Virus record (IMG/VR): IMGVR_UViG_3300028800_000001
Span: 248,001-312,000 of that record
Length of the DNA stretch: 64,000 nt
Direction: 5' to 3' (one strand)
Position numbers and translations under genes: made by a program. The notes beneath the pieces were generated by a model that was not told where the DNA came from, ran no database searches, and saw only the letters and a list, made by a program, of their open reading frames with translations. This document shows positions 2,638 to 63,999 of this stretch, piece after piece. The first letter of the stretch is position 1; each line of letters starts with the position of its first letter.

Positions 2638-2699
2638 TCACTCTCTACCCATTTTTCCTAGTTGCTGGAGTCTTTTCGCAAAGCTGTGCTACAGTGATC

Positions 2700-2839
2700 A
2701 GGCAGTAGTCGGTTGAAAAACCGAGGGAAAAGGCAGTGCAAAGAGTTATCTCTTTAGGGAGGAAAGAAGTCAGCTTTGGTGAGCGTTTCGCTGGGCTTCT
2801 TTTTGAAGAGGTATCACCACTCTTTGCATTGCCTTTTTT
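2700..2839 (+). ncRNA. candidate small RNA unit 1
   Basis: Extended -10 TGCTACAGT 2687-2695; GAAA-tetraloop hairpin 2709-2724; 19-bp basal stem 2728-2746/2819-2837 with further inner stems; U tract. Confidence 0.6.
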
Positions 2840-2862
2840 CTGAAAATCTGCTATACTTTTTA

Positions 2863-2963
2863 TGCGGTATCCTCTTTCTATAGGATCGCACTCAAGCAGA
2901 AATGGAACCTTGCTTTCTTTCCCAGGCGACAAGGAAAGGGAGCGCGTAAGAGGTTCCATTTTT
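2863..2963 (+). ncRNA. candidate small RNA unit 2
   Basis: TTGCCT-17-TATACT (2829-2857); 5' hairpin 2863-2890; long bulged hairpin 2900-2961 with G-U pairs on + strand; U tract. Confidence 0.6.
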
Positions 2964-2989
2964 GTTGTGCTTTTTGCTATGCTAGAGAG

Positions 2990-3061
2990 GTAGTGTGAAA
3001 GCAGCAGGGGGCAAGTGGCATTCGGTATGCGTCGGAAGTACTTGTCTTGTGCTGCTTTCTT
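2990..3061 (+). ncRNA. candidate small RNA unit 3
   Basis: Extended -10 TGCTATGCT 2975-2983; stems 2997-3006/3050-3059 and 3008-3016/3040-3048. Confidence 0.5.
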
Positions 3062-3094
3062 GACAGTATTTTTCCCTCCATGCTACACTTGGCT

Positions 3095-3201
3095 GTGTAG
3101 TGGAAACGCTATGCTTTGGTTTTCAAGAAAGAGGAAAGATACCTTCTTCCACAGAAAATTGGGTACTGTGTGCGTTTTTCTGTCGGTATCTTTCCTCTTT
3201 T
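3095..3201 (+). ncRNA. candidate small RNA unit 4
   Basis: TTGACA-18-TACACT with TG extension (3060-3089); GAAA-tetraloop hairpin 3095-3114; perfect 16-bp stem 3128-3143/3185-3200 plus inner 8-bp stem. Confidence 0.6.
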
Positions 3202-16337: not shown

Positions 16338-16413
16338 AATTAATTATTTTTTTATTTTCCCGCGTAAATCTCTTTACAAAATTAATTATATGCCACTAGT
16401 ATGTAAAAGACAA
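16338..16413 (-). promoter_or_regulatory. sigma70 promoter overlapped by paired AATTAATT motif
   Basis: TTGTCT(16413-16408)-17-TATAAT(16390-16385); AATTAATT at 16338 and 16380. Confidence 0.75.
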
Positions 16414-16456
16414 GCTTTTCTTCTATGAATATTCAGAAATACAGAAAAGTGGTACT

Positions 16457-54898: not shown

Positions 54899-54976
54899 AA
54901 TTAATTATTTTATTTTTTCGTTTTCACAAAATCATTTTCTAAAATTAATTATAGGCCAGAACGGGTTAAAAGACAA
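54899..54976 (-). promoter_or_regulatory. sigma70 promoter overlapped by paired AATTAATT motif
   Basis: TTGTCT(54976-54971)-17-TATAAT(54953-54948); AATTAATT at 54899 and 54943. Confidence 0.75.
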
Positions 54977-55049
54977 GCATTTTTTCACTGTATTTTCAGA
55001 ATATAAATAAAAACCGCTCAAACTTCTTCAAGATGAGCGGTATGCGAGG

Positions 55050-60046: not shown

Positions 60047-60399
60047 TAAAAGTATCTCTTTTCCAGGGTGAGATACGCCATCGTCACTTCGCCGTCACGA
60101 AATTCGATACGCATTGGCGTTTCGTCTTTTGCCCATACCAGTAAGAAACAGTTTTGCACATAAGGGGCAAGTACTTCGAAGAAGGTGCGCAGTCCACTGC
60201 CGTATTGGTCTTTTATTTCGGTGATATAGACGTTATTTTCAAGAATCACCGTCTTGATTCCGTAGAAAGTGAAAAAGTCAGCAATGGTATCCTTATGCTT
60301 TGGCTCATGCGAGAGTCTACGTGCGTAAGCTAAAAGTGCAAGATATAATTCTGGGAAACGCTCGTTACTGAGTACGAAAGTATTCTGTAGTAAAATCAT
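60046..60399 (-). CDS. hypothetical protein, paralog of 59714-60046
   Basis: ADFFTFY, FFEVLAPYVQ, PMRIEFRDGE. Confidence 0.6.
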   Translation of the reverse strand: MILLQNTFVLSNERFPELYLALLAYARRLSHEPKHKDTIADFFTFYGIKTVILENNVYITEIKDQYGSGLRTFFEVLAPYVQNCFLLVWAKDETPMRIEFRDGEVTMAYLTLEKRYF

Positions 60400-61115
60400 A
60401 GATTTAATTCCTTTAGTTTTTCTTCAAACAGCGTGTTGCGCTCTGCCGTCAGTCCAATAACTTGATAGCCTCCAAGGTCTTCGTCAGGTTCCAAAAGTGC
60501 CACTGCGTTTCCGTAAGGTGGATCATCAGGCGTACACAACCGGTAATGATAGACGCCGTATTCAACACCATCAACGGTGACATCAATTGTGTCTTTCCCC
60601 CAGATACAGAGCTCCACCGTATGCTTTGGGTTGTCAAAGCGGAGTGTGCGTGCTGCGTCTTCTCGCAGGGCGTTAAGATGCTCTTCAACGTCTTCGAGAT
60701 AAGGTTGTGGGTCAACAGGATAGCGCGCTAAGAGTGTTCTCGCCTGTTCTACTGAAGTACACCAGAAGAGGTTCGCCTCAGTGACCGTTCCGTTATCGCT
60801 CACACGGATTAAAACATTGCGTTCATCATCGCTATCTTCATCAACGACCACAAGCAACTGCTCGTCATCACGGCAGGCCAGTAAGCGTTCACGTGCATCG
60901 CTGTAGTTGCGCTCTGCCATCCAACCAAGTTTGCTTGCCTCTTGGAGTGTTCTCGGTGGTGTCGCATTCTTAATAGGATTGCGAAGCAAAAATGCGCGTG
61001 CTTCACGCTCCCAGTGAGCAGAAAATGTTTGTTGGCTCAGCCAGTGCACATAATTGCGTGGCACCGCGCTCAGCCCTTTGCCTTTGTGTTTTCCAAACGG
61101 AAGTAGTTCTTCCAT
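60396..61115 (-). CDS. protein with N-terminal DUF3820-like (PFGKHKG) domain
   Basis: LPFGKHKGKGLSAVPRNYVHWL. Confidence 0.65.
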   Translation of the reverse strand: MEELLPFGKHKGKGLSAVPRNYVHWLSQQTFSAHWEREARAFLLRNPIKNATPPRTLQEASKLGWMAERNYSDARERLLACRDDEQLLVVVDEDSDDERNVLIRVSDNGTVTEANLFWCTSVEQARTLLARYPVDPQPYLEDVEEHLNALREDAARTLRFDNPKHTVELCIWGKDTIDVTVDGVEYGVYHYRLCTPDDPPYGNAVALLEPDEDLGGYQVIGLTAERNTLFEEKLKELNL

Positions 61116-61894: not shown

Positions 61895-61961
61895 TTTCTC
61901 CTTGAATGTTTTCGTTTATTTCTTATACAGGAAGTATAGCTGAAAGGCGCTTCTACGTCAA
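61895..61961 (-). promoter_or_regulatory. sigma70 promoter with conserved leader AGAAATAAACGAAAA
   Basis: TTGACG-17-TATACT (61961-61933); leader 61923-61909. Confidence 0.7.
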
Positions 61962-61994
61962 GTATTTTTACCATGTATTTTCAGAAAAAAGAGG

Positions 61995-62023
61995 TTGACA
62001 GCCAAAAAAGTCTCTGCTATACT
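61995..62023 (+). promoter_or_regulatory. near-consensus sigma70 promoter
   Basis: TTGACA-17-TATACT with TG extension. Confidence 0.8.
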
Positions 62024-62029
62024 AAGGAC

Positions 62030-62311
62030 TCAAGACTGGTGGCTAAGGCTCTTGCGGGTTGCTTCCCAATAAGAGAGTTGAAGGTGCGAAGAGATAGAAC
62101 GGTAGGGACTGTTTCTGCGGGGGTCGAAATGGAAACTATCAACGCGGAGCCACTCTCTTCCGTAGTAGGGCAGATGGTGTTTTTCTTGAAGACGGACAGC
62201 AGGCGTTGAGAGAGAAATATCTTTGTTCCCAGGCACCGACCTGGAAAACGGTAGAGCAAAAAGCTTGCTCGGCAGAAAAGAACCTATAAATTATAGGTTC
62301 TTTTCTTTTTT
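62030..62311 (+). ncRNA. candidate ~280-nt structured noncoding RNA
   Basis: Between strong promoter and terminator; no ORF of 60 aa or more starts inside; multiple hairpins. Confidence 0.55.
62274..62311. terminator. intrinsic terminator, likely bidirectional
   Basis: AGAAAAGAACCTATAA/TTATAGGTTCTTTTCT + T-run. Confidence 0.7.
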
Positions 62312-62635
62312 GCCAGCGTAGTACGCACCATCACGCAACATTGTGCGTACTACTTTTTGGCAGGCAGTGCATTGATGCTTGCGCACGAGTATCACATGTG
62401 GTGTTATGACACCGCTGGCATTTATGCTATTTTGATCCCACTGCTCTTCTGCAAGAAAAACAAATTCGTGCGGTCCTTTCCCTTTCTTGCAGAAATCTTT
62501 GGGATACTTTGCTGGGTGCCTTGGCAATTCTTCAGCCATCATGGAAACGAGTATATCATTTTTTGGGTGGCTTTGCTTTGGGAGCGGTTTTATCACGATT
62601 ATCAATCGTGCCATATTTTTCTTTATTAGGGGCAA
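62291..62635 (-). CDS. basic Zn-finger-like hypothetical protein (start uncertain)
   Basis: FCKKGKGPH...CTACQK. Confidence 0.45.
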   Translation of the reverse strand: MPLIKKNMARLIIVIKPLPKQSHPKNDILVSMMAEELPRHPAKYPKDFCKKGKGPHEFVFLAEEQWDQNSINASGVITPHVILVRKHQCTACQKVVRTMLRDGAYYAGKKEKNL

Positions 62636-62859: not shown

Positions 62860-63999
62860 TTAGTTTCCTGTAAACTCTGAAGGGACGACATTTTGTGTTG
62901 ATTTGAGTAATTCTTCCAGGTAACTGAGCACTTCGGTTGAGGTGATCTTTTGCGTTGTCGGCTGATTCGCCTGTAATGCACTCAGTTCTTTGGAAAGTGC
63001 GGTTGCGTTGGCGATAGCTGCGTCACGCTGTTGTTGCAAAATAACCATTTGTTTGCTCGTATCAGTCAGTGTTTGCTGGAGTGTTGCTGCTTGCTTTTGA
63101 AAGTTGGCCGCTTCTTCGGCTTCCTTAAAGAGATTGTCAATATGCGTCATATAGCAGTTGCTTGCCCCTGGAGGACTATCAAGCAGGTGGGAAGGGTCAT
63201 AACTGATTTCACCGCGTTCAAAACGCTGTCGCGTTGCAGTACGGCCCTGATGATCAACAACAGAATGTCCAACATTGTCGAGTGCTTTCTCTTCGTTGCT
63301 TATTGGCAGGCCAAGGAGCGTAATGCCGTTGAGGCCAATATTGCCGACGTTTTGATAAAAGGCGAGAATATCGCCTCCAAGAAAGCAGCCATTCTTTTTG
63401 CATTGCCAGCGATTTGTGCCAACCAACTTAAAATAATTGGCAACAACAGGATTTCCGATATCAAGCATGGTATTTGCTCCTAAGAAGGTGAAGAGGCCGT
63501 CCCACGGGTACGTACCTGGGCAGTCGCGTCTGCTGACAGGATCGATAGAAAAGTGGCCGGTGATACCGCCTGTGGCGTCGGCTTTACGCGTCGGAATATT
63601 CCAGCGCTGACAAATATGTTTAATGAGTGTAAAACTTGCCTGCTGCTGTTGTGGGGTGAGTGCGAGGCCATTGGTGACGTTATTGACGTGTTCAATAGAG
63701 ATAGTAACTAAGTTAGGATTGATTGACCACCAGGAATCCGCGCCTGCGGTAATCACCCCGTTTGCCCATGCCGCGTCATGTTCGCTGACGCATTGCACAA
63801 TAATTCCATCACGTCCAACGACGTAGTGAGCTGAGACTTGCGATGCAGGGTTGGCAAAATAGTTGGCAATATTTTGTGCGGTTGGATCGCCTTGTGATCC
63901 GGTACCATGCAAAATAAGATGTGTAGGGCTGTGCCCATAGCGATTCGTCCACATATTTGCTGTTGGTATCCAGAGCGCTCCTGGTTCGTCCATGATCAT
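62860..63999 (-). CDS. N-acetylmuramoyl-L-alanine amidase endolysin with LGFP-like and coiled-coil C-terminus; start may lie beyond window
   Basis: LILHGT, VSAHYVV, AWANG, ISIEH, GHFSID...DCPG; LGLPISNE...QRFERG. Confidence 0.9.
   Translation of the reverse strand: MIMDEPGALWIPTANMWTNRYGHSPTHLILHGTGSQGDPTAQNIANYFANPASQVSAHYVVGRDGIIVQCVSEHDAAWANGVITAGADSWWSINPNLVTISIEHVNNVTNGLALTPQQQQASFTLIKHICQRWNIPTRKADATGGITGHFSIDPVSRRDCPGTYPWDGLFTFLGANTMLDIGNPVVANYFKLVGTNRWQCKKNGCFLGGDILAFYQNVGNIGLNGITLLGLPISNEEKALDNVGHSVVDHQGRTATRQRFERGEISYDPSHLLDSPPGASNCYMTHIDNLFKEAEEAANFQKQAATLQQTLTDTSKQMVILQQQRDAAIANATALSKELSALQANQPTTQKITSTEVLSYLEELLKSTQNVVPSEFTGN

Follow-up and report, generated by a model that had tools for sequence, protein, structure and literature searches.

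A probable autonomous non-coding RNA gene with a predicted pseudoknotted fold in a jumbo phage of Ktedonobacteria-like hosts

What is made from positions 61995-62311 of the DNA analyzed here, where a strong consensus promoter and a terminator enclose some 280 nucleotides (nt)? This DNA, hereafter the window, is a stretch of 64,000 nt comprising bases 248001-312000 of a 327,295 bp virus with direct terminal repeats (IMG/VR record IMGVR_UViG_3300028800_000001). An earlier note, made from the sequence alone, had proposed a structured non-coding unit of ~280 nt, and the predicted RNA of ~282 nt bears this out: it has six covarying helices, backed by register controls, and no conserved reading frame. 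It is very likely that the locus is a real non-coding RNA gene. Our whole explanation, namely an autonomous non-coding RNA gene of an undescribed family, carried by phages of Ktedonobacteria-like hosts and yielding a folded RNA that acts in trans, has in our estimate a probability of roughly 0.6. Taken by itself, the trans-acting folded-RNA mode is a tentative proposal, somewhat short of even odds.

The transcription unit consists of the following features.

61995..62000, + strand: -35 hexamer TTGACA, from reading of the window and from the consensus scan.
62015..62023, + strand: extended -10 TGCTATACT, with TGC at 62015-62017 and TATACT at 62018-62023, behind a 17-nt spacer.
62030..62311, + strand: predicted RNA of ~282 nt, ending at the U-run of the terminator.
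62274..62311, + strand: intrinsic terminator with a 15-bp stem (hairpin 62274-62306) and U6, bidirectional.
62321..62355, + strand: second hairpin with T5, a possible back-up terminator present only in the window's phage.

In consensus scans the promoter was of a near-perfect sigma-70 type with an extended -10, and the site at 61995 was the sole 12/12 promoter in the window when TATACT is counted as a -10 variant, which agrees with the earlier description of TTGACA-17-TATACT as the best consensus present. The predicted transcript also ends where it had been proposed to end, at the hairpin and T6 that finish at 62311, while its 5' end was placed 7 nt (+/- 2) past the -10. Because the promoter is an extended -10 consensus, host RNA polymerase would be expected to transcribe the gene at a high level as soon as infection begins, so that the RNA would be made early. 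The predicted RNA has a minimum free energy of -100.2 kcal/mol, with a z-score of -3.6 against shuffled sequence.

Homologues came from the contigs with the closest endolysins (L003 and L004, 81% and 74% identity), where the element occupies the same position, convergent with the lysis genes. A covariance model built from the window, L004 and L003 (R1) was then run on 151 of the 169 Ktedonobacteria genomes and retrieved a further form, L024 (34.7 bits, E 8e-8). A short-form model (R2) recovers all three homologue lineages at 39-104 bits. The homologue search and covariation analysis called for by the earlier note hence delivered three further lineages, and compensatory changes in six helices.

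L004:7696-7972, - strand: homologue, predicted RNA of ~278 nt; the same sequence is found in L005/L013.
L003:7445-7668, - strand: homologue, predicted RNA of ~223 nt, without a 45-nt segment.
L024:1427-1615, - strand: homologue, predicted RNA of ~189 nt, on the 4.5-kb contig L029.

The form shared by L004, L005 and L013 is ~79% identical to the window over the RNA and 74.5% identical over the whole contiguous block from helix P1. All four loci carry a promoter and a terminator around the element. The -35 is kept at the same spot in L004, L003 and L024 as TTGAC(A/C); the -10 region reads TGCTAAAAT in L004 and TGCTACAGT in L003, and L024 has TTGACA-18-TATACT together with a separate terminator of its own. 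A terminator hairpin forms in 4/4 lineages, and its sequence is unrelated between lineages: those of L003 and L024 lie in the same place as that of the window, to which they bear no sequence relation. From reading of the alignment, the stem of the second hairpin (62321-62355) is not kept in L004.

L024 lies just upstream of a tyrosine integrase gene (L029:870-2030, - strand), which follows ~120 nt past the terminator on the same strand. The encoded protein shares 46% identity with the only integrase in the window's phage; given this resemblance, contig L029 most likely represents part of a related phage, binned into a metagenome-assembled genome. The element is thus seen in two genomic settings, beside lysis genes at three loci and beside an integrase at one. 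We also observed mosaic relations: the L003 endolysin is the closer one (81% vs 74% at the amino acid [aa] level), yet its RNA is more divergent and its left-hand neighbours are different, which suggests recombination around the RNA module.

To compare the four sequences, we cut them at invariant motifs, tabulated the pairs by script and used slid registers as controls. The features of the RNA are listed here.

62039..62044, + strand: P1 5' strand GUGGCU, followed by an invariant AA; pairs with 62148-62153.
62048..62078, + strand: P2 hairpin, with outer stem 62048-54/62072-78, inner stem GGG 62056-58/CCC 62065-67, loop UUGCUU (62059-64, GCUU invariant) and internal loop AAUA.
62088..62093, + strand: P3 5' strand GAAGAG; pairs with 62155-62160.
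62094..62099, + strand: invariant joining strand AUAGAA, identical in 4/4 lineages.
62100..62144, + strand: 45-nt lineage-specific insert, present in the window and L004; 5 nt instead in L003 and L024.
62145..62153, + strand: invariant CGG and P1 3' strand AGCCAC (AGCCGC in L024).
62155..62160, + strand: P3 3' strand CUCUUC, one nucleotide after P1.
62161..62234, + strand: variable region, different among lineages and almost gone in L024.
62235..62252, + strand: P5 hairpin ACCG...CGGU, whose loop always ends in AAAA.
62254..62270, + strand: P6 hairpin with the invariant loop AAAAGCU (62259-62265); the stem forms in 4/4 lineages when each region is folded.

P1 pairs in 24/24 cells in register, against 8-12/24 when slid. 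In L024 it changes to GCGGCU/AGCCGC, a replacement of U-A by C-G on both strands, and its flanking pair is G.U, C-G or G.U. P3 pairs in 23/24 cells and covaries at 4/6 pairs, from GAAGAG/CUCUUC to GAGAAG/CUUCUU in L003 and to AUCCAC/GUGGAG in L024; the L024 version forms 5/6 pairs and, with a neighbouring A-U, reads UCCACA/UGUGGA. Compensatory changes were found at five pairs of P2, which is in register in 25/28 cells of the outer and 12/12 of the inner stem (37/40 in total). Similarly, P5 pairs in 15/16 cells, changes from C-G to U-A in L024 and has a loop of 10 down to 4 nt, and the P6 stem covaries as GAGCA/UGCUC, GAGUG/CGCUC, GAGA/UCUC and GGGAU/AUCCC. In the P1, P2, P3 and P5 controls, slid registers dropped pairing to about half. 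Overall, six helices are backed by compensatory changes. Around these, the RNA has ~40 invariant unpaired bases, including the stretches UAA, GCUU, GAA, AUAGAA, CGG, AAAA and AAAAGCU. It can do without the 45-nt insert and the variable region.

The order of the strands is P1-5' < P3-5' < P1-3' < P3-3'. Because the strands of P1 and P3 interleave and both helices covary, the RNA falls into the pseudoknot structural class, and we consider a pseudoknotted fold of the 5' core likely on the basis of these comparisons. The first pseudoknot loop would hold P2 and the second AUAGAA, followed by 5 nt, or by the 45-nt insert in L004 and the window, and after that by CGG, and the 3' strands of P1 and P3 are nearly continuous. 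A closing helix GGUGGCU/AGGCACC proposed by RNAalifold was rejected: it conflicts with the covarying P5 and is not kept in L024, and this alternative P1 partner, AGGCACC, does not track the U-A to C-G change of L024.

The fold is more complex than the row of hairpins, with a possible long-range pair, that had been drawn from the window alone, although three of those five helices are retained with compensatory changes: CTCTT..GGG/CCC..AAGAG is P2, GAGCAA/TTGCTC is P6 and the long-range GTGGCT/AGCCAC is P1. The other two were not upheld. AGAACGGT/ACTGTTTCT lies within the insert that is missing from two lineages and is not maintained by L004, and CCAGG/CCTGG is lost in L003 and L024. What the row of hairpins had missed was the P1/P3 pseudoknot.

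Could the transcript instead be the messenger RNA (mRNA) of a small protein? The window does offer frames. One of 56 codons opens at GTG 62039, and a frame from the same start place has at least 61 codons in L024. The Shine-Dalgarno (SD)-like GGGGG that stands 5 nt before ATG 62129 gives the following feature.

62119-62131, + strand: SD-led start GGGGG-N5-ATG (ATG at 62129) of a 26-codon frame inside the 45-nt insert.

The earlier statement that the region has no SD-led open reading frame (ORF) therefore does not hold to the letter for the window, but this ATG is unique to it, being absent in L004 and part of the segment deleted in L003 and L024. The GTG 62039 frame ends after 16 codons in L004 and 20 in L003, and its peptides share little between lineages. 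Across the four lineages we found no reading frame conserved in start, length or sequence; substitutions keep base pairs, not amino acids. On this comparative evidence we regard the small-protein reading as close to refuted, and give it hardly any credence.

We then asked whether the RNA belongs to a known class. Rfam 15 gave zero gathering-level matches in the window. With E values up to 10, a 601-nt region returned just sub-threshold terminator-hairpin matches (62206-62360), and L003/L004, L024 and a 156-nt minimal form returned nothing. There was no Rfam 15 match to RNase P, signal recognition particle (SRP) RNA, 6S, riboswitches, ribozymes, pRNA, GOLLD, ROOL, manA or c4, no YrlA/Y RNA match for the RNA studied here, and no transfer RNA (tRNA) or transfer-messenger RNA (tmRNA) in the window by ARAGORN. 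This is in agreement with the earlier note, which could not match the element by eye to tRNA, tmRNA, RNase P, SRP or 6S.

Other candidates were tried and rejected. Neither a reverse transcriptase (RVT_1) match nor a second sequence copy able to act as a variable repeat was found anywhere in the 327-kb phage; a retron msr-msd, the template of a diversity-generating retroelement and a non-coding RNA of the type found with defence-associated reverse transcriptases are excluded, as the phage has no reverse transcriptase. An omega-RNA or bridge RNA (TnpB, IscB, IS110) was set aside with no PF07282 or PF01548 match in the phage, and a ToxI-like type III antitoxin RNA with no direct-repeat family inside the transcript 62030-62311. 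The cumulative GC-skew minimum lies at 242 kb, not 310 kb, which speaks against a replication-origin transcript. Since every comparison with a known family failed to accommodate the RNA, we take it to represent a new family rather than a member of those tested.

Does the RNA act on its own, or does the locus work in cis? No + strand gene lies downstream of the element in the window, L004 or L003; only L029 has one, the integrase. A role as a leader is unlikely because three of the four loci have no such gene and the terminators are strong, and the same two observations lead us to propose that the product acts in trans. As a cis-acting element, the promoter and terminators might keep the early - strand operon insulated against the convergent lysis operon, or regulated read-through might yield RNA antisense to the genes for lysis (in L029, sense mRNA of the integrase); the RNA as a product would then be irrelevant. 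This would fit the three loci that converge on the lysis cassette and have a bidirectional terminator in common, and the short distance from the L029 terminator to an integrase on the same strand. However, an insulator requires neither a conserved pseudoknot nor invariant loops, no alternative pairing with the terminator, such as an anti-terminator, is conserved, the terminators are long perfect stems, two of them in tandem in this phage, and the fold is kept in the different setting of L029. We therefore consider a purely cis-acting element very improbable.

If the RNA acts in trans, it could do so by base pairing. A small RNA (sRNA) of this kind would use the exposed P6 loop AAAAGCU, the strand AUAGAA or the P2 loop as a seed to pair, over short and imperfect matches, with mRNAs of the host or the phage, and the fold would give stability. 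Its own promoter, terminal hairpin and U-tail are the usual sRNA form, invariant loops sit on covarying stems, and the phage has other sRNA-like units. On the other hand, the invariant loops measure 6-7 nt, with no invariant unpaired run above 7 nt, and in the rest of the 327-kb phage genome no stretch complementary to the RNA exceeds 13 nt, a length expected by chance. Moreover, a seed and its scaffold need neither a conserved pseudoknot nor as many as ~40 invariant unpaired bases scattered along the RNA. We judge this explanation unlikely. The folded-RNA mode is favoured over it because complementarity within the phage is at chance level and conservation is spread over the whole tertiary-type fold.

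The same fold might hold an active core. Aptamers and small ribozymes typically have a compact pseudoknot whose joining strands are invariant, and an A-rich strand. The RNA combines these traits with a stand-alone unit of strong predicted expression, so that the pseudoknot could be the catalytic core of a self-cleaving ribozyme or the binding core of a ligand-sensing aptamer (an orphan riboswitch). No ribozyme or riboswitch of Rfam matched, though, even at E up to 10, no regulated gene lies downstream, and no cleavage-site signature is recognizable by sequence. This explanation is in our judgement quite improbable.

A further alternative concerns the loops. The P2 loop GCUU and the P6 loop AAGC are both invariant in 4/4 lineages and complementary over 4-6 bp, and AGCU in the P6 loop is self-complementary. 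Pairing between molecules could lead to dimers, rings or larger particles, by analogy with phi29 pRNA, ROOL, GOLLD and manA, and cages and oligomers have been reported for phage-associated RNAs of <200 nt (10.64898/2026.07.01.735769; PMC12286853). Against this, the loops do not covary, the same pairing could be intramolecular and Rfam gave no pRNA, ROOL, GOLLD or manA match; when compared with a phi29-type pRNA in particular, the loops are complementary but invariant, and there is neither a terminal helix nor an RF00044 match. We hold self-association to be improbable. The same low weight goes to its fullest form, a compact phage "particle" RNA, in which an abundant early transcript with a fold of ~190-280 nt, unrelated to manA, ROOL, GOLLD and phi29 pRNA, would assemble into rings or cages via P2 GCUU and P6 AAGC/AGCU. 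A variant on exactly the same footing would have a stand-alone, aptamer-like core act as an RNA decoy that captures a signalling molecule or a protein of the host.

Our preferred reading remains an autonomous gene for a folded RNA that acts in trans. The early transcript would fold compactly, and base pairing between GCUU of the P2 loop and AAGC of the P6 loop might lock this fold or else join molecules. The RNA may then bind or sequester a protein or a small ligand, as a binder or decoy, or self-associate; long antisense pairing, a leader function or translation would not be its mode. Several points weigh against this reading. The pair table comes from a hand-anchored alignment, and both MAFFT and the covariance models mis-register P3 of the short forms and the 45-nt insert. 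P1 has just one internal and one end compensatory change, most of its bases being invariant, and the outer P2 stem of L024 contains two C.A mismatches. The proposed pairing of the P2 and P6 loops is invariant and hence does not covary. Only four lineages are available, two of them ~80% identical, so that the covariation stems from few independent events and an R-scape-type statistic is impossible. All ten public runs that hold the sequence are recorded as probably DNA. Finally, the mode of action is one that we only infer, and an sRNA mechanism with a short seed may operate instead.

How widespread is the element? R1 found a single copy in the window's phage. No further member was found with an exact-pattern search of the 169 Ktedonobacteria genomes, with R1 on 112 genomes of the family, or with R2 on samples of 150 genomes each from the class and from the Chloroflexota phylum. 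BLASTN searches with the locus and with its L003 and L024 forms gave no match among GenBank phages, pattern scans of IMG/VR gave nothing, or chance or coding matches only, and a pattern scan of one JGI metagenome returned just the window's own contig and L013. Seven other loci from this metagenome scan were dismissed as chance (L009 and L010 are coding-like, the rest had no or marginal BLAST or R1 matches). Model matches in L025, L023, L026 and L028 were rejected as weak (14.9-22.5 bits); L025, the sole one of these that was read, lies in coding-like sequence. The RNA was absent beside the more distant endolysin relatives P0004, P0005 and P0007 and beside P0124 and P0127, relatives of the 153-aa neighbour. 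A word-based search with that 153-aa neighbour found only itself, and the 100-aa neighbour has no relative on record. The RNA is thus rare, with one copy per phage and, in the 169 genomes of Ktedonobacteria, a presence on only one 4.5-kb phage-like contig. A captured host housekeeping RNA was rejected on these grounds: the searches found it in the 169 genomes on that contig only, and did not find it in the 150-genome Chloroflexota sample. As far as sequence searches can tell, the RNA family is real, rare and phage-borne.

The named relatives of the endolysin come from Ktedonobacteria (Thermosporothrix, Dictyobacter and Ktedonobacter), from which we infer that the host of the phage probably belongs to this class of the Chloroflexota. 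The public runs that hold the window are rhizosphere metagenomes; reads from four runs, compared over 1,901 nt, represent the same phage at low depth, with zero variants inside the RNA and no covariation gained. The RNA unit is a lone + strand unit between two - strand operons, bounded as follows.

61933..61961, - strand: divergent promoter TTGACG-17-TATACT of a - strand operon, the left boundary of the RNA; it precedes a 100-codon gene with a good SD.
62860-63999, - strand: Amidase_2 endolysin of the lysis cassette that forms the right boundary, together with a 56-aa hydrophobic protein and small ORFs.

The 3' end of the lysis cassette falls within the bidirectional terminator, which overlaps the 3' end of a convergent - strand ORF. 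This ORF (62291-62635) resembles the 152-aa gene of L004 as far as 62681, past its own first ATG/GTG/TTG, and may have an unusual start or be a gene damaged in this phage. A 239-aa protein (window 60396-61115, - strand) matches PF12843 (QSregVF_b, putative quorum-sensing-regulated virulence factor) over a short N-terminal part, at E 8e-6.

Promoters of the form cTTGAC(g)-17-(c)TATACTtcc make up a family spread over the whole phage, to which that of the RNA belongs. At >=11/12 the phage has 47 sites, compared to 11.5 +/- 3.2 in block-shuffled sequence, and 38 of the 47 are on the - strand, where most genes lie. Upstream of several - strand family promoters we noted TTCTGAA(A/T)AT (- strand; window 61973-61985, 16366-16438 and 54929-55001), a candidate UP element or regulator site. 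At window 2650-3200 (+ strand) there are three or four short units, each with a TGCTAnAnT -10-like box, hairpins and a T-run. One of them has a full promoter, TTGACA-N-TGCTACACT, at 3060-3089, and the TGCTA extension that the earlier note saw in both this array and the RNA promoter is indeed common to them. The units gave no Rfam match and show no likeness to the RNA studied here.

Elsewhere in the phage, eleven tRNA genes are clustered at G000 206435-215344 (- strand, ARAGORN), beside a Ro60 gene; the Ro60/TROVE protein is part of a 639-aa frame (G000 203389-204519, - strand). Directly upstream of the TROVE gene is a YrlA-like RNA with tRNA-like T and D arms (G000 204970-205083, - strand; L037:5970-6083, - strand), which scored a sub-threshold 30.7 bits and would give this jumbo phage a Ro-Y RNA pair. 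The pair lies 105 kb from the RNA studied here. The single tyrosine integrase of the 327-kb phage (G000 39541-40659, - strand), 46% identical to the one beside the RNA homologue on L029, is the reason to think that the phage may be temperate.

It is rare for a structured RNA to have a tertiary-type fold that is conserved, and the majority of known classes have turned out to be ribozymes, riboswitches or ribonucleoprotein cores. The carriers of the present one would be giant phages of a poorly studied soil lineage, the Ktedonobacteria of the Chloroflexota. Promoter, RNA and terminator move together between genomic settings, as a useful accessory gene would, in a phage that is unusually rich in RNA genes, since it also has Ro60 with a Y-RNA-like gene, clustered tRNA genes and a series of small transcription units. 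The means by which phages take over the host or counter its defences would be extended by an RNA-based one, should the RNA prove to bind a host factor or to self-assemble. The minimal 189-nt L024 form is a tractable construct for probing, ligand screens and cryo-electron microscopy, and a covariance model is now at hand for mining soil metagenomes.

How does the RNA compare with known systems? Like GOLLD, ROOL and the manA motif, which are independent RNA genes found mainly on phages and prophages, with conserved folds and a biochemical function that is not known, it is a phage-borne gene of its own. It has no sequence or structure match to them, however, is far smaller than GOLLD and ROOL, differs in architecture and has four known members in one host lineage. 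Several orphan phage RNAs of this type self-assemble, and phage-associated RNAs of <200 nt have been reported to form cages and oligomers (PMC12286853; 10.64898/2026.07.01.735769).

With phi29 pRNA (Rfam RF00044) it shares being a phage-encoded, stand-alone and, by prediction in its case, strongly transcribed structured RNA, the two covering 120-280 nt, with two loops that are complementary over 4 nt. In phi29 pRNA, complementary loops join the molecules into a ring. The present RNA has a pseudoknot core instead of a helix closing its 5' and 3' ends or a three-way junction, shows no cmscan match and no covariation in the complementary loops, and its carrier is a jumbo phage of 327 kb, whereas phi29 is a small protein-primed podovirus.

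Y RNAs (YrlA, RF02553) and their partner Ro60/Rsr invite comparison because they are structured non-coding RNAs of similar size and the same phage encodes Ro60 (TROVE). Yet neither of the tRNA-like arms (T and D) is present in the RNA, nor is a terminal stem to which Ro could bind, and it gave no YrlA match. Base-pairing sRNAs of prophages such as DicF are likewise small genes of mobile elements with their own promoter and an intrinsic terminator. DicF-type sRNAs conserve a seed and little else, whereas the present RNA conserves a multi-helix pseudoknotted fold and has no detectable target complementarity.

As for the pseudoknot aptamers of riboswitches (SAM-II and preQ1-II), the RNA differs from them in having no regulated gene, expression platform or Rfam match, and in the P2 hairpin embedded in loop 1. 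Its topology also departs from the classical H-type pseudoknot, in which the short connector lies between the 5' strand of S2 and the 3' strand of S1; here it lies between the two 3' strands. Nevertheless, it is similar to these aptamers in its two crossing helices, its invariant joining strands and an A-rich strand placed so that it could run along a helix groove.

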